Source of the DNA: Pseudomonas aeruginosa PAO1
GTDB taxonomy: Bacteria; Pseudomonadota; Gammaproteobacteria; Pseudomonadales; Pseudomonadaceae
Direction: 5' to 3' (one strand)
NCBI RefSeq assembly: GCF_000006765.1
Contig: NC_002516.2
Length of the DNA: 64,000 nt
The notes beneath the pieces were generated by a model that saw nothing but the letters and a program-made list of their open reading frames with translations, was not told the DNA's origin and did not search any database. Below, piece by piece: positions 36,845-54,730 of this stretch. Numbering within the stretch: the first letter of the stretch is position 1; every line of letters starts with the position of its first letter. The position numbers were made by a program, and so were the translations under genes.

Positions 36845-36925
36845 TCCATGGGAAGGAAGGGGCTGCACGCCCCTTCTTTTGCCGAGCAGGAGCCTGGTGG
36901 ACAGCAACGACTACGGACCGGACCC

Positions 36926-38344
36926 ATGCCTGATTCCTCCATGAAGCGCGGGGCTACGCTCTGCCTTGCCCTTGCCATAGGTCCGGGCTCGACCCTCGCC
37001 GACGACTCCCTGGGCCATCGCGACAACATCAGCACCGGCCTGAACCAGCGGCAGAAAGCCGAAATGAAGGTGCCGCCGGGCTTCGTCGAAGGCTCGACGC
37101 TGAACGGTTTCATCCGCAACTACTATTTCGCCCGCGACAACCACGACACCCCGTCCCGCCGCGACCAGCGCGAATGGGCCCAGGGCCTGATGCTGTCGTT
37201 CCGCTCCGGCTATACCGACACGCCGATAGGCATCGGCCTGGATGCGCACGCCTTCTACGGCCTGCGCCTGGACGGCGGTGGCGGCAGCGGCGGTGCCGGC
37301 GTGCTGCCGCTGGACTCCGCCGGTCGCCCCGCCGACAGCTTCTCCGCGGCCGGCGCGGCCCTCAAGCTGCGCGGCCTGGACAGCCTGCTGAAGATCGGCG
37401 ACCAGTTGCTGGAGAACCCGGTGATCGCCAGCGGCGTCAGTCGCATGGTGCCGCAGAGCTACCGTGGCGTGACCCTGAAGAACTACCATTTCCGCGCGCT
37501 CGAACTGGACGCCGGCTTCGTCGAAGCCACCCGCCTGCGCAACCAGAGCGGCCACAGTCATCTCACCAGCGGCTACGGCAACGGCACCAAGGGCGGTATC
37601 GCCGCCGATCGCGAAAGCCCGCACATCGCCTGGCTGGGCGCCAGCTACAGCGCCCCCGGCGGCAGCCAGGCGACGCTCTACAGCGGCCGCCTGGAGGATA
37701 TCTGGAACCAGCACTACCTCGGCCTCAGCCAGCCGTGGCGGCTTTCCAGCCAATTGACCCTGACGCCCTGGCTGCATTACTACAAGACCCGCGACCAGGG
37801 CCGCAGCCAGCTCGGCCGGATCGACAACGACCTCTACAACGCCGGCCTGACCCTGGCCGGCGGCGGCCAGTCGCTGAGCCTCAGCCTGCAAAAGGTCGAT
37901 GGCGACACCCCGTTCGACTTCATCGCGCAGAACGACCGGACCTTCCTCTACGAAAGCAACGCCATGCAGTACGCCGACTTCAACGGCCCCGGCGAGCGCT
38001 CGTGGAAGATCCAGTACCAGGCCAGCCTGGCCTTCCTCGCCGCCCCGGACTGGCAATTCGGCGCCGCCTACGGCCGTGGCCAGGCCGACCTGACCCGGGT
38101 CGACCCGGACAGCGCGGGCTATGGCTACCTCTACAACCCCAATGGCAAGAACGCCCAGCACTGGGAACGCGACCTGTCGCTGCGCTACGCCTTCCCCGCC
38201 GGCCCGGCCAAGGGCCTCAGCGTGACCCTGCGCTGGGCCACCCACCGCCCCGGCGAAGGCTACACCGCCCCCGGCAACACCCGCGGCAACTCCAGCTCCG
38301 ACGAATACCGGGTGGTGGTCGACTACCCGATCAGGTTGCTCTGA
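36926..38344 (+). CDS. opdJ: OprD-family outer-membrane porin (probably OpdJ)
   Basis: RNYYFARD, EWAQG...FRSGYT, ADFNGPGERSW, terminal DYPIRLL; start codon uncertain; symbol from recalled synteny. Confidence 0.8.
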   Translation: MPDSSMKRGATLCLALAIGPGSTLADDSLGHRDNISTGLNQRQKAEMKVPPGFVEGSTLNGFIRNYYFARDNHDTPSRRDQREWAQGLMLSFRSGYTDTPIGIGLDAHAFYGLRLDGGGGSGGAGVLPLDSAGRPADSFSAAGAALKLRGLDSLLKIGDQLLENPVIASGVSRMVPQSYRGVTLKNYHFRALELDAGFVEATRLRNQSGHSHLTSGYGNGTKGGIAADRESPHIAWLGASYSAPGGSQATLYSGRLEDIWNQHYLGLSQPWRLSSQLTLTPWLHYYKTRDQGRSQLGRIDNDLYNAGLTLAGGGQSLSLSLQKVDGDTPFDFIAQNDRTFLYESNAMQYADFNGPGERSWKIQYQASLAFLAAPDWQFGAAYGRGQADLTRVDPDSAGYGYLYNPNGKNAQHWERDLSLRYAFPAGPAKGLSVTLRWATHRPGEGYTAPGNTRGNSSSDEYRVVVDYPIRLL

Positions 38345-39300: not shown

Positions 39301-39566
39301 GGCGGATAACGCCCTGGAAACGCCGACACCTCCCCGGGTCCGTAGGGCGAATAACCGCTCGCGGTTATCCGCCGCTTATCCGCGACATCGGCGGATAACG
39401 CCCATGGCGTTATTCGCCCTACGCACCCCGGAAACGCCGGACAGCGTCCCAACTCCGTAGGGCGAATAACCGCTCGCGGTTATCCGCCGCTTATCCGGGG
39501 TATCGGCGGATACCGCCTGTGGCGGTATTCGCCCTACAGGCCCTGGAAACGCCGGACAGCTCCCCC
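39301..39566. repeat. Tandem REP doublet (REPIN/BIME-like) array, GTAG family
   Basis: GTAG-GGCGAATAACCGC-TC-GCGGTTATCCGCC at 39342-39373 and 39457-39488; inverted partners at 39390-39422 and 39505-39537; truncated copy at 39301; period 115 bp. Confidence 0.85.
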
Positions 39567-39696
39567 GGACATTTCCGCAGGCTCTCTCAGAAGCCCGGGA
39601 ATTGGATAAAAACCCAGTAGGAGGATGATGGAGGGGCCGGCAAATCCATCCCGCAGGGACAGGACCGAACGGCACTGCCCTCTATTTTCTGAGGGC

Positions 39697-39778
39697 AAAA
39701 AAGACGCGGGCCGCAGGTGGTGGAACACCTACGACCCGCTAACCACAAACCAGCTTATGAAGGAGCTGACCCATGGCT
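39697..39778 (-). ncRNA. Predicted ~80-nt cis-antisense RNA covering the RBS and start of the 104-aa gene (SymR-like layout)
   Basis: -10 TATCAT (39791-39786); 14-bp stem 39739-39706 fully paired on the minus strand (2 G-U pairs) followed by GUC-UUUUUU. Ends inferred; -35 weak. Confidence 0.5.
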
Positions 39779-40087
39779 AAGCCGAATGATACGTCCAACC
39801 CCGAGGTAACAGAATCGTCCCCCCGCTTCGTCCCGCTGCTCCCCACCTCCCAGGCCGACATGTGTCCGCGTAGCGCCACCCTGTACGTGGACACCCATGC
39901 ACTCCCCACGCACTTGTTCGACAACGCGAAAGTGCGCTTGAGGTCGGCGATCAACATCCTGGCCATGACCCGTTTGCTCGATGAGAAAGAAGAGCCCGGC
40001 GGCACCCTGGCCTACATCAACGGTGCGTTGCTGTCGCTGCTCAGCGATGCCTTGTCCGAAATCGAGGCGGGCCACCCGAGCCTGTAG
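39773..40087 (+). CDS. Orphan 104-aa cytoplasmic protein (PA2422-like)
   Basis: AAGGAG RBS 7 nt upstream, own terminator downstream; no domain I can name with certainty. Confidence 0.8.
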   Translation: MAKPNDTSNPEVTESSPRFVPLLPTSQADMCPRSATLYVDTHALPTHLFDNAKVRLRSAINILAMTRLLDEKEEPGGTLAYINGALLSLLSDALSEIEAGHPSL

Positions 40088-40106
40088 CGCCGCTCCCCGG
40101 CGCGAC

Positions 40107-40132
40107 GCCCCCGGCCTGGCCGGGGGCTTTGT
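40107..40132 (+). terminator. Intrinsic terminator of the 104-aa gene
   Basis: GCCCCCGGCC-T-GGCCGGGGGC-TTTGT. Confidence 0.7.
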
Positions 40133-40668
40133 GGCATCGCCCATCACAGGACCTTTCGCGCCCGAACGGCACGCTTGATCGCCGTCCCGGTCCTCGCGAA
40201 ACGGCCGCCAATTGCCCGAAGCTTCCGACCCTTTTTTCGGACGATTTCTTACGCCCTTATAAATCAGTAAGTTACGAGACCTCGAAAAAAGAGGTTTTCT
40301 GGCAGGGAAAAACCCGCCGCTCCTGTTTTCCGCCAAATGGCTATAGGTTTTCCGGGCCAGCCCAGTGCCACGCAGATAACCAGGAAATGCTCAGGGAACG
40401 GGTTCGGCTGCGAGCAGTTCACCGCCATATAGACAGTGGACAAGAGCCTACCCTCATAGGCCTAGCTGTTCAGCGGGCTTGTGCCATCGGAGACTTCGTA
40501 CAAGGCTTAGCCATTGCCGTCCTACAGGCGCTGTCAGTAGGCTTTTTTCGCCGGCGACTTCGGTTCCCGGCAGGCCACAGCCTGCTGGCCCAACACCCAC
40601 GAGCGGCCTGTCTCCCTGCCGCGCCGGCAGAAGCCAGGCAGCGGACAGCTCAGAGAAGGATTTCTCCT

Positions 40669-41181
40669 ATGCACGGCCATACCCAGCTTGCCCCGCACTA
40701 CTTCTTCCGACAGCAGCGATTGCTGCGCGCGCTGCTGATCGACGACCAGGCCTGGTTCGTCCTCGACGACTTCGCCCGGCTCATCGAACACAGCCAGCCC
40801 GAACAGATGCTCGCCCGCCTGGACGACGACCAGGCGCGCCGCGAGTCGTTGCGTTCCGAACGTGGCGAAGACCAGGCGCAGTGGCTGATCAGCGAGTCCG
40901 GCGCGTATGCCGCGCTGATCTACCAGCAGCGCGGCGATGGCGGCGAATTGCGCCGCTGGCTCAGTGGCGAGGTGGTGCCGGAGTTGCGCAGCGCCACCGA
41001 CGACAGCGGCATGCCGCGCTACGTCAAGTTGCGCTGGGAGCGCCAGGTGGTGCACATGCTCGACTGGCAGGGCAAGCTCTGGGTGAATTTCAGCGAGATG
41101 CCCGACCTCCTCGAACGCCAGGGCGAGCCCATGGTGCAACTGGGTTGGCGACGCTGGTTGCGCAAGTTGCGGCCGCTCTAG
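40669..41181 (+). CDS. Bro-N domain protein (170 aa)
   Basis: LRALLIDDQAWFVLDDFARL...QWLISESGAYAAL...LRRWLSGEVVPELR is the Bro-N pattern; AGAAGGA RBS before ATG 40669. Confidence 0.82.
   Translation: MHGHTQLAPHYFFRQQRLLRALLIDDQAWFVLDDFARLIEHSQPEQMLARLDDDQARRESLRSERGEDQAQWLISESGAYAALIYQQRGDGGELRRWLSGEVVPELRSATDDSGMPRYVKLRWERQVVHMLDWQGKLWVNFSEMPDLLERQGEPMVQLGWRRWLRKLRPL

Positions 41182-41665: not shown

Positions 41666-54730
<13,065 letters not shown>

Follow-up and report, generated by a model that had tools for sequence, protein, structure and literature searches.

How is PA2422, a small gene of Pseudomonas aeruginosa, controlled, and what kind of protein does it encode? In the 64 000-nucleotide stretch of the PAO1 chromosome analysed here (the window), the gene lies among chromosomal neighbours, a porin gene and a pyoverdine NRPS gene, with no replication genes near it; in the PA14 gene table of Wurtzel it is PA14_33370, 315 nt long and situated between the homologues of PA2421 and PA2423. 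A first-pass annotation, made from the letters of the DNA, had described PA2422 as an orphan gene whose Shine–Dalgarno (SD) sequence and start codon are covered by a short antisense RNA, in the manner of symE/SymR of Escherichia coli, and had suggested a type I toxin–antitoxin or other antisense-controlled module. Each of the five sequence features on which it relied was recovered at its given position. The features of the locus are collected in Table 1.

Table 1. Positions of the gene, of the predicted antisense RNA and of the associated signals, numbered from the first nucleotide of the window.
Feature	Position	Strand	Basis or remark
Gene PA2422 / PA14_33370 (104 aa)	39773..40087, stop codon included	+	ORF
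Protein regions of PA2422			Residues 1 to ~17, leader common to SymE-family genes; residues ~18–104, small beta hairpin and helical hairpin (predicted)
Leader codons 1–17 (MAKPNDTSNPEVTESSP)	39773..39823	+	Opposite strand carries the putative antisense promoter; common to SymE-family genes
SD AGGAG of PA2422	39761..39765	+	7 nt before ATG; wholly under the predicted antisense RNA
Predicted SymR-family cis-antisense RNA, ~82 nt	39697..39778	−	5′ end A39778, opposite codon 2; 3′ end in U-tract
Stem-loop 1 of antisense RNA	39741..39778	−	Arms 39778–39764 and 39755–39741; complementary to start codon and SD
Stem-loop 2 (intrinsic terminator stem of antisense RNA)	39706..39739	−	14 bp, including two G–U
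U6 tract of antisense terminator	39697..39702	−	A-run on the plus strand
Antisense −10 box TATCAT	39786..39791	−	Inside PA2422 codons 5–7 (AAT GAT ACG, 39785–39793)
Weak −35-like hexamer TTCTGT	39809..39814	−	17 bp upstream of the −10 box; codons 13–14 (Thr-Glu)
Terminator-like hairpin of PA2422 (GCCCCCGGCC-UGG-CCGGGGGC, then UUUGUGG)	40107..40134	+	Fold
Upstream block common to paralogous loci of the P. aeruginosa group	39540..39651	+	Window, L124 and L128 closely similar

The predicted antisense RNA runs from A39778 to the U-tract at 39702–39697, its 5′ end being placed by alignment to SymR and by the 7-nt distance that separates it from the −10 box upstream, and its length of ~82 nt, with the SD and the ATG (39773–39775) inside its span, agrees with the ~80-nt RNA proposed earlier. 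An 84-nt RNA of the minus strand folds at −44.4 kcal/mol, compared with −24.5 ± 3.2 kcal/mol for shuffled sequences (z = −6.28), and none of 200 shuffles folded as well. The hairpin at 39706–39739, which the first-pass annotation had read as a minus-strand terminator, is indeed present and was called by the terminator scan on that strand only, with 14 pairs (10 of them G–C), a 6-nt loop and the tail GTCTTTTTTG; its stem is perfect on the minus strand and has two internal mismatches when folded on the plus strand. A simple terminator scan did not rise above background for the region (two terminators found against 1.7 expected), and it is the comparison between loci, given below, that decides against chance. 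On the mRNA, the inner helix of stem-loop 1 has a mirror-image counterpart that partly sequesters the SD, and the hairpin previously suggested to hold this sequence was recovered there as CAGCUU paired with GAGCUG, a 6-bp stem that contains part of the SD. We also considered the hairpin at 39706–39739 as the terminator of a 193-residue minus-strand open reading frame (39755–40336) and rejected this assignment; the frame was judged to be a G+C shadow, because the cassette described below is conserved before unrelated downstream sequences.

The −10 box TATCAT, which had been placed in codons 5–7 of the gene, reads at 39791–39786 on the minus strand. The −35 hexamer had already been described as poor, and a consensus promoter scan of the region bore this out, finding no canonical sigma-70 promoter on the minus strand and leaving TTCTGT uncalled. 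Family-wide, only TT (0.67, 0.66) and G (0.67) are conserved in the −35 region, and the −35-like hexamer is present in six of the nine loci of the PA2422 protein family. The poor −35 and the missing consensus call are a point against antisense control of the gene.

Comparison with Rfam gave a symR (RF01809) match at 39703–39778 on the minus strand, with 48.3 bits (E = 1.6 × 10−7) over model positions 1–77 of 77. The score is below the RF01809 gathering score of 61 bits, and cassettes adjoining verified SymE_toxin genes score 46–55 bits (46.3 at L003 and 55.0 at L013); because cassettes before bona fide SymE_toxin genes outside the Enterobacteria likewise fall below the gathering score, this threshold is put down to the narrow seed of the model. 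A covariance model built in the present analysis from more than 100 related cassettes (CM R1) scored 78.3 bits at 39686–39778 on the minus strand, its sole copy in the window, and 61.3 bits at an E. coli locus annotated by PGAP as a SymE family toxin. By these matches the predicted antisense RNA is homologous to SymR and not merely similar in layout, which goes beyond the likeness of architecture originally claimed, and the homology to the symE/SymR loci spans the RNA, the 5′-UTR and the first ~15 codons, rather than being an analogy only. Weaker matches were found to two further families, namely PtaRNA1 (RF01811) at this position of the minus strand, with 30.8 bits and E = 1.3 × 10−3 (gathering threshold 47), and the R1162-like plasmid RNA (RF00043) over the same 76 nt on the plus (mRNA-sense) strand, with 37.7 bits and E = 2.6 × 10−4 (gathering score 55); other cassette loci score 41–44 bits with RF00043. 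The antisense RNA is thus below every Rfam gathering threshold.

A DNA pattern scan revealed more than 100 loci with the same cassette, in a census that carries selection bias, since the pre-filter selected for the outer pairs of stem 1 and for AGGAG. In 109 distinct cassettes, 96.9% of cells were paired, compared with 82.4 ± 0.4 in shuffles and 34–44% in slid controls, and 321 cells were compensatory, compared with 77 ± 7 in shuffles. Pairing is more complete on the antisense strand (96.9%) than on the mRNA strand (84.0%), with G–U pairs making up 13.6% of cells. Compensatory changes occur in all four pairs of the inner helix of stem-loop 1 and in 10 of the 14 pairs of stem-loop 2; the outer five pairs of stem-loop 1 are invariant, partly because the scan pattern selected them, and the SD AGGAG, although conserved across cassettes, also belonged to that pattern. 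The −10 position is TAnnnT in 89 of 99 distinct cassette loci.

Among the relatives of PA2422 itself, the cassette is found at all nine sampled Pseudomonas loci, down to ~35% protein identity, with scores of 62–87 bits. The first-pass annotation had named beforehand two things to look for among homologues, covariation of the stem and, as the point on which its reading could fall, retention of the internal −10 box, the minus-strand stem and the U-tract. The stem covaries in the protein family (100% of the terminator cells paired over the nine loci, with four covarying pairs) as it does across the 109 cassettes, and the −10 box, stem and U-tract are kept in nine of nine loci, the −10 box even though the encoded residues differ. 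The U-tract reads GUCUUUU at eight of these loci and GUCGUUU at L128. Between PA2422 and its paralogue L124, identity is 89% in the cassette and 61% in the coding region.

Judged by its conservation, PA2422 is a real gene: relatives comprise ~295 near-identical sequences and paralogues at 36–75% identity, in which frame and length are kept in several Pseudomonas species, dN/dS is 0.18–0.77, and the downstream terminator is conserved. The label ‘orphan’ has to be amended in this respect: the P. aeruginosa group and the P. nitroreducens group both contain relatives of the protein, with a few leaderless ones elsewhere that occur without any cassette. Many of the copies deposited for this family have a truncation or a frameshift. 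The terminator previously attributed to the gene corresponds to a GC-rich hairpin at 40107–40127, 20 nt past the stop codon and followed by UUUGUGG; it is weak by itself (z = −1.65) and is not listed by the terminator scan, and a hairpin is kept after the stop codon in L124, L128, L044 and L132, the last of which has flanking A- and U-runs and forms a textbook U-rich terminator. An apparent upstream open reading frame (39625–39780) was rejected, as the paralogues carry indels there whose lengths are not divisible by three.

The block upstream of the cassette that is common to the paralogous loci is a candidate site for the sense promoter, and no sigma-70 consensus match was found in it. A motif search over the upstream 300 nt gave no LexA box (CTG-N10-CAG) in the window, L124 or L128, and such boxes are present upstream of some SymE loci; no other inducer site was found upstream of PA2422. 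No transcription start site was detected for PA14_33370 in PA14 dRNA-seq, which fits a silent gene. The antisense RNA was not found in the accessible portions of the supplementary tables of P. aeruginosa transcriptome and Hfq studies, and the literature searched contained no report of an antisense RNA over PA2422.

The protein had been said to lack the AbrB-like signature of SymE, and we found no match to PF08845 (SymE_toxin), nor to any Pfam family at E values up to 10. Scans of the protein and its relatives against Pfam, NCBIfam, PADLOC and PHROGs, and a sequence profile search of the PDB with the PA2422 protein, were likewise without a match. An AF2 model made with 17 sequences reached a pLDDT of 81.4 (an earlier run on six sequences, with a pLDDT of 57, was too poor for use) and has strands at residues 19–21 and 38–40 and helices at 45–68 and 77–100; the 17-residue leader is disordered, residues 1–10 having a pLDDT of 57. 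A Foldseek search of this model against the PDB gave no significant fold match, the best hit having an E value of 2.0 and only generic helical hairpins being returned. By these searches and the model, the PA2422 protein is not SymE, its fold being modelled as a helical hairpin and not as the AbrB-like beta fold. UniRef labels three relatives (P0006, P0075 and P0081) ‘DUF3077 domain-containing’, and DUF3077 proteins resemble the PA2422 family as small helical proteins restricted to Pseudomonas. This label was not reproduced, as neither PA2422 nor any of 16 relatives matched a DUF3077 Pfam-A model even at E values up to 1–10. The acidic, soluble and helical character of the PA2422 protein, together with its lack of a catalytic or membrane signature, speaks against toxicity. 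We found no report of any PA2422 function, nor functional data on its toxicity or on neutralization by the RNA, in the literature searched.

The other proteins encoded downstream of the cassette are mostly of one kind, 59 of 86 being SymE_toxin; the other 27 are not, and several of these are conserved helical proteins. Some cassette loci, L001 and L002, have truncated open reading frames only. In hhalign comparisons the PA2422 family and the Rhodanobacter/Dyella class aligned in leader residues 1–15 only, and a comparison with the downstream helical open reading frames of the Dyella and Luteibacter loci was not significant (E = 0.017, probability 2.7%). Despite a likeness by eye, therefore, we do not claim a shared ancestry for the non-SymE proteins.

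The PA2422 locus shares with symE/SymR of E. coli (RF01809, PF08845) a cis-antisense RNA of ~77–82 nt with two hairpins, a predicted antisense promoter within the first codons of the target gene, the position of the RNA over the start codon, SD and 5′-UTR, an RNA sequence and structure that are detectably homologous over the full model, the first ~15 target codons, which are common to SymE-family genes, and a monocistronic unit with its own terminator. It differs in that the PA2422 protein has no SymE/AbrB-like domain and is modelled instead as an acidic helical hairpin, in that motif searching found no sign of SOS control, and in that its RNA, with a score under the RF01809 gathering threshold, is known here from sequence alone. 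SymR overlaps the ribosome-binding site and start codon of symE, and mutation of the symR promoter raises the SymE protein 7-fold (PMC4147584).

With the R1162/RSF1010-type countertranscript, the PA2422 cassette shares the motifs CUAACCAC, GGAG and AUGGCU; in contrast to that type, the match at PA2422 is mRNA-sense and below the gathering score, and the locus is chromosomal and not an IncQ-type replicon. The R1162 RNA serves the control of plasmid copy number and is not part of a toxin system, and the match suggests that such a cassette can also serve non-toxic genes, a second observation that speaks against toxicity. PtaRNA1/XCV2162 (RF01811; Pfam ‘Plasmid_toxin’), a candidate type I pair known from computational description, resembles the PA2422 locus in that an antisense RNA faces the 5′ end of a small gene and in a patchy distribution across beta- and gammaproteobacteria. 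The PA2422 protein lies outside the XCV2162/Plasmid_toxin family, because it has no Pfam match of any kind; that family has a predicted membrane domain (PMC5367252).

Taken with the conservation of the cassette, these comparisons suggest that PA2422 is probably controlled by a SymR-family cis-antisense RNA, made from a promoter within its own codons, that silences its translation. This reading is built on the cassette, its homology, the structural covariation, the strand bias, the conserved −10 box and the non-SymE protein, all of them shown by the DNA sequence. Weighing against it are the poor −35, the Rfam scores under the gathering thresholds, the lack of the RNA in the accessible parts of the published transcriptome and Hfq tables, and the lack of a LexA box or other inducer site upstream of the gene. 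We regard constitutive antisense silencing as the likeliest mechanism and infer both the transcription of the RNA and the repression. A promoter within codons 5–14 (−10 TATCAT, weak −35) would fire on the minus strand, and the resulting RNA would start opposite codon 2, cross the start codon, the SD and the 5′-UTR, and end at the strong intrinsic terminator. Because this RNA would be perfectly complementary to the translation-initiation region, its pairing with the mRNA should block ribosome binding, as for SymR and symE in E. coli, and PA2422 protein would be made only when sense transcription outran the antisense RNA. As to origin, the RNA gene, the 5′-UTR and the first 15–17 codons form one conserved cassette, which also stands before SymE toxins in many proteobacteria and which, in PA2422, continues in frame into an unrelated protein, acidic and modelled as a helical hairpin. 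Our preferred reading of the protein, that it inhibits growth or burdens the cell in some other way, so that the locus would be a type I toxin–antitoxin-like pair with a new toxin, we put at a little under an even chance.

The same antisense RNA might instead be attached to a gene that is not a toxin, as a portable translational silencer for a protein that does no harm but has to be kept at a low level, such as a regulator, an inhibitor or an immunity-type protein. The acidic, helical PA2422 protein shows no sign of a nuclease, of a membrane protein or of any other toxin, and found no match in Pfam, NCBIfam, PADLOC or the PDB or by fold; the cassette also matches an RNA family concerned with copy number rather than with toxins; 27 of the 86 downstream proteins are not SymE_toxin, several of them conserved helical proteins; and leaderless relatives occur without the cassette. 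However, the majority of the downstream proteins (59 of 86) do belong to a toxin family, many copies of the PA2422 family are truncated or frame-shifted, as is common for toxin genes, and the sense gene appears silent in PA14, so that we regard a non-toxic role as possible but somewhat doubtful.

Two further explanations dispense with one or the other half of the antisense-controlled gene. If there were no antisense RNA, the hairpins would belong to the sense mRNA as a cis-acting leader that sequesters the SD or works as an attenuator, and TATCAT would be a mere codon pattern. The inner helix of stem 1 does form on the mRNA, where it holds part of the SD, no consensus promoter was called on the minus strand, and the antisense transcript is missing from the accessible portions of the published P. 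aeruginosa supplementary tables. A leader of this kind is nevertheless improbable, given the asymmetry by which G–U pairs of the antisense strand become C–A on the mRNA (96.9% against 84.0% paired), the T-run that follows the stem on the minus strand only, the TAnnnT fixed in 89 of 99 loci although codons 5–7 encode different residues, and the homology of the element to SymR, an experimentally characterized antisense RNA. Alternatively, the gene might be the illusory half, the locus being a former symE locus that has lost its toxin and the 104-residue open reading frame a chance frame in G+C-rich DNA. Such DNA does yield long spurious frames, for example the minus-strand frame at 39755–40336, and cassettes followed by truncated open reading frames only are known from L001 and L002. 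Decay of this kind is nonetheless very hard to credit, as frame and length are kept at 36–75% identity in several Pseudomonas species with dN/dS below 1, the model with 17 sequences reaches a pLDDT of 81, the downstream terminator is conserved, leaderless homologues exist, and the PA2422 protein carries no SymE_toxin signal.

Antisense silencing of PA2422 can also be set in a wider and more speculative scheme, in which the SymR-type RNA gene, the 5′-UTR and the leader of 15–17 codons would be a portable ‘silencing cassette’ that recombination has attached to five or more small protein families with no relation to one another (SymE, the PA2422 helical family, a Rhodanobacter/Dyella family, an alphaproteobacterial coiled-coil family and a Morganella family) as well as to the replication control of IncQ plasmids. 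PA2422 and its paralogue would then found, in the P. aeruginosa chromosome, a new family of type I toxins that are neither SymE nor membrane proteins. As a whole, this scheme seems to us unlikely.

P. aeruginosa is among the most heavily transcript-mapped pathogens, and to our knowledge few type I systems have been described in it. The predicted antisense RNA over PA2422 is unannotated in this model pathogen; if it is expressed, P. aeruginosa gains an antisense regulator of the SymR class and perhaps also a type I toxin of a new kind. Protein-based searches for type I systems rely on toxin HMMs and would pass over loci in which another protein has taken the place of the toxin. A single antisense cassette, whose sequence, structure and embedded promoter are all conserved, precedes unrelated proteins, so that antisense regulators may be swapped as whole units, like promoters or riboswitches. 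The cassette thus offers a practical handle, in an RNA-based rather than a protein-based search, on further small, tightly silenced genes.

The elements that the first-pass annotation had named around PA2422 are all present in the sequence. A terminator scan called the hairpin read as a minus-strand terminator on that strand only, with 14 pairs, a loop of 6 nt and GTCTTTTTTG as its tail. Folding of the minus-strand RNA gave two perfect hairpins at −44.4 kcal/mol, compared with −24.5 ± 3.2 kcal/mol for shuffled sequences (z = −6.28; 0/200 as stable); on the plus strand the terminator stem forms only with two internal mismatches, and the long first stem is absent. The proposed minus-strand −10 does lie within codons 5–7, and the predicted RNA covers both the SD and the ATG. 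We infer that its 5′ end is the A opposite the T of codon 2, 7 nt past the −10, which is position 1 of the SymR model. The −35 had been called poor and is indeed weak: across the cassette loci among the matches listed, this region retains only TT.nG. The gene's own terminator stood in part: its hairpin is present and conserved in related loci, with a canonical A-run/stem/U-run in the counterpart at L132, a locus from another genome, but taken alone it is a weak terminator. A promoter scan recognized no sigma-70 promoter for the sense gene, no LexA box was found upstream of PA2422, and the P. aeruginosa supplementary tables, in the parts covered, contained no transcript data for the antisense RNA. 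A 193-aa minus-strand ORF, Arg/Gly/Ala-rich, which spans the entire 104-aa gene and ends just before the antisense terminator, was judged a G+C shadow ORF and rejected as a gene.

In an Rfam scan of 2.2 kb around the locus, ranked by E-value, the top match was symR (48.3 bits, E = 1.6e-7; gathering score 61). PtaRNA1 matched on the same strand (30.8 bits) and an R1162-like plasmid RNA on the opposite strand (37.7 bits); all three lie below curated thresholds, so that annotation pipelines would not call the RNA. Cassettes preceding bona fide SymE genes scored 55.0, 46.3, 50.2 and 48.2 bits against Rfam symR, no better than that of the window. The R1162 RNA functions in plasmid copy-number control. 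Its model, RF00043, hits the mRNA-sense strand of the cassette with 37.7–43.8 bits, and the model consensus has GGAG...AUGGCU at its end. From this, the IncQ control region and the SymR cassette look like homologs, with RF00043 apparently built in mRNA orientation.

The same 100 nt were found by blastn, in plasmid records, at 81–88% identity in two P. aeruginosa records and in Burkholderia stagnalis, and the Burkholderia ORF starting at the conserved ATGGCTAAG is a Pfam SymE_toxin (E = 5.4e-6). A pattern made from the invariant parts (CCGCTAACC, N10–24, AGGAG, N5–10, ATGGCTAA), scanned against one genome per species, matched at least 120 loci; about 10 of those listed are chance matches to 'MAK...' genes with high expression (tuf and rplK, for instance), and the others share an obvious common architecture. 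Hosts among the matches listed are Burkholderia, Paraburkholderia, Pseudomonas, Xenorhabdus, Photorhabdus, Yersinia, Morganella, Collimonas, Janthinobacterium, Herbaspirillum, Dyella, Rhodanobacter, Luteibacter, some Alphaproteobacteria, Acidobacteria and others. An alignment in the RNA sense (A4) comprised 109 distinct cassettes, and RNAalifold recovered two hairpins, with standard pairs in 96.9% of pair cells, compared with 82.4 ± 0.4% after column shuffling and 34–44% in a control with partners slid by 1–3 columns. Both-side changes numbered 321 cells, against 77 ± 7 in shuffles, and 14 of 23 pairs showed compensatory change (10/14 in the terminator stem, 4/4 in inner stem 1). The outer five pairs of stem 1 are invariant and carry no evidential weight, because they are partly fixed by the search pattern; the invariance of CCGCTAACC, AGGAG and ATGGCTAA, on which the loci were selected, is likewise meaningless. 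Read on the mRNA strand, the same columns were paired in 84.0% of cells, because 13.6% of cells are G–U pairs, and this difference argues that the structure is selected on the antisense strand.

The −10 position lies outside the search pattern. Among the matches listed, the minus-strand hexamer at gene positions 19–14 was TAnnnT in 89 of 99 distinct loci (TATGAT 32, TATCAT 25, TAGAAT 17, with further variants; frequencies by position T.90, A.92, t.62, n, A.92, T.94), and in 91 the best −10-like hexamer nearby lay exactly there. The residues encoded beneath it vary (N-D-T, N-H-K, H-S-K, D-C-N, N-L-N, etc.), which places the conservation at the DNA level.

A covariance-model search, whose E-values are rough because calibration was shortened, covered nine family loci: the window, the paralog next to pmpM, two P. 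paraeruginosa copies, and one each from P. nitroreducens, P. denitrificans, P. nicosulfuronedens, Pseudomonas sp. ZM23 and a metagenome. The module occupied the same position in all nine (62–87 bits). The first-pass annotation had named this comparison of homologs as a test, and the outcome supports it: all cells of the terminator stem were paired (100%) and four of its pairs covaried (11 compensatory cells; shuffles 4.2 ± 1.3), TAnnnT stood at codons 5–7 in every locus (TATCAT, TATGAT or TATAGT), and the RNA ended GUCUUUU in eight and GUCGUUU in L128, a P. paraeruginosa copy. Identity to the paralog was 89% in the module versus 61% in the rest of the CDS. No cassette was detectable, with filters off too, at the leaderless relatives P0065 and P0063; P0065 is 43% identical (E = 2e-18) to P0049, a metagenomic relative with the same leader as PA2422. 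The P. denitrificans and P. nicosulfuronedens copies have a tandemly duplicated SD-start segment (TCAGCTCCTTAATGG twice, RNA sense). A ~110-nt upstream block is common to three paralogous loci of the P. aeruginosa group. It is preceded by REP-like units (GTAGGGCGAATAACCGC...GCGGTTATCCGCC) with sub-threshold Rfam matches to the Pseudomonas sRNA P33 on both strands (27–36 bits; gathering score 45), and units like them stand ahead of the paralogous copies in L124 and L128.

Coordinates of features in the window and at related loci
Feature	Location	Strand	Remark
Porin	36848-38344		ORF
Two REP-like inverted-repeat units	39310-39546
Shared upstream block	39540-39651
Antisense RNA	39778-39695 (segment folded)	-	predicted
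symR (RF01809) match	39703-39778	-	model positions 1-77 of 77
RF00043 matches	39705-39780; L128 5932-6008; L049 1255-1327	+ (window)	Rfam
Antisense terminator	39706-39739	-
Rejected ORF	39755-40336	-	193 aa
SD	39761-39765		AGGAG
PA2422	39773-40087	+	ORF, 104 aa; 99-100% identity to ~295 deposited P. aeruginosa proteins
Antisense -10	39791-39786	-	TATCAT; codons AAT GAT ACG
Hairpin after PA2422	40107-40127
PA2423 homolog	40669-41181	+	Bro-N domain
NRPS	41666-54694	-	ORF, 4342 aa, pyoverdine
Tandem SD-start duplication	L137 1400-1506; L139 1402-1506		within stem-loop 1
CRISPR-DR4 repeats and IS elements	L128 6587-6734, 2491-2518
Cargo, Rhodanobacter/Dyella, 112-118 aa	L049, L099, L104, L107		no Pfam match
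Cargo, alphaproteobacterial coiled-coil, 61-65 aa	L040, L047, L058, L102, L117		no Pfam match
Cargos, Morganella 93 aa; Variovorax 62 aa; Acidobacteria 165 aa; HTH-like 112 aa	jointly L021, L068; L060; L023; L111		no Pfam match

The protein had been described as lacking the SymE signature, and this held: searches of Pfam, NCBIfam, PADLOC and PDB sequences gave no match to it, and its AlphaFold2 fold differs from the AbrB-like SymE fold. The model (17 sequences; pLDDT 81.4, pTM 0.68) has a low-confidence N-terminal leader, a beta hairpin (19–21 + 38–40) and a helical hairpin (45–68 + 77–100); Foldseek against the PDB gave a best E of 2, and PHROGs one marginal match (E = 0.064), whose family has no known function. 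Searched with a profile, a set of 1.84 billion representative proteins yielded only 30 matches, namely the P. aeruginosa family, P0049 and three leaderless relatives (E ~1e-4). Further members, from the group of P. nitroreducens, P. denitrificans and P. nicosulfuronedens, came from a second, word-based profile search; each of them begins MA-x-x-(N/D)-(H/D/Y)-T. By its conservation PA2422 is a real gene: reading frame and length hold in relatives as distant as 36% identity, dN/dS ranges below 1 (NG86, 0.18–0.77) and the terminator is conserved; deposited family copies are often truncated or locally frame-shifted, chiefly in the paralog class.

What the cassette carries bears on whether this protein is a toxin. 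Among the matches listed, 59 of 86 downstream proteins (distinct, complete, at least 40 aa) match Pfam SymE_toxin at E ≤ 1e-3 (best 4.7e-24; a Pseudomonas sp. protein reaches 61.5 bits and a Xenorhabdus protein 74.2, gathering score 29), a share valid only for this pattern-selected cassette subtype. An accessory E. coli locus, with a cassette at 61.3 bits under the covariance model built here, is annotated by PGAP as 'SymE family type I addiction module toxin'. The remaining cargos listed comprise several conserved non-SymE classes, among them the PA2422 family. With hhalign, this family and the Rhodanobacter class align over residues 1–15 alone; what they have in common is thus the leader, which is the antisense promoter seen as coding sequence. 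We put the toxicity of the PA2422 protein, which by a count of its residues is net acidic, at a little short of an even chance; that the cargo is non-toxic seems somewhat less likely, though a serious possibility. At some loci (L025, L029, L095 and L118, Dyella; L028 and L051, Luteibacter; L022, L085 and L088) the cassette opens only a 29–39-aa Pro/Arg-rich ORF, with a helical ORF of 80–146 aa on the same strand 40–260 nt further downstream; these ORFs resemble the PA2422 domain by eye, and the hhalign comparison was non-significant (E 0.017, probability 2.7%).

The window DNA is the pyoverdine region of P. aeruginosa. PA2422 corresponds to PA14_33370 (315 nt), a 'hypothetical protein' in the operon table of Wurtzel et al. 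2012 (PMC3460626, supplementary file 4), flanked there by homologs of PA2421/PA2420 (hypothetical protein, porin) and PA2423, and the gene order in the window agrees. The literature searched contained no functional study of PA2422; one network paper names it, with nothing further, among genes of unknown function whose expression differs in cystic fibrosis infection. The PA2423 homolog, the next gene 3′, also matches phage anti-repressor (Ant) families (PHROGs, E = 4.5e-13), which suggests that the PA2422–PA2423 stretch is a remnant of mobile DNA. The L128 copy adjoins CRISPR-DR4 repeats and IS elements, and in the PA14 table of PMC3460626 type I-F CRISPR-Cas genes (PA14_33300–33350) lie between the PA2423 and PA2422 homologs of PA14, so the locus borders a genome-plasticity region. 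PA2422-family copies in L138 and L140 (P. nitroreducens group) adjoin CdiA-like genes (Fil_haemagg/DUF637), and the E. coli SymE-family locus L136 adjoins an RHS-repeat gene; such neighbourhoods are typical of inter-bacterial competition islands.

Sequence comparison shows an RNA gene that is conserved and structured, is under selection on the antisense strand, carries a terminator and an embedded −10 that is itself conserved, and is homologous to SymR. The predicted RNA is perfectly complementary to the PA2422 translation-initiation region. SymR overlaps the symE RBS and start codon, and mutation of the symR promoter raised SymE protein sevenfold with little change in mRNA and independently of RNase III, pointing to a translational block (review PMC4147584); the same block would act on PA2422. 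PA14 dRNA-seq, in the available part of PMC3460626, gave no sense TSS for PA14_33370, consistent with a silent PA2422. The original observation is thus confirmed and its interpretation supported. The SymR family itself is known; what would be new is the control of a non-SymE protein by a SymR-family antisense cassette on the P. aeruginosa chromosome.
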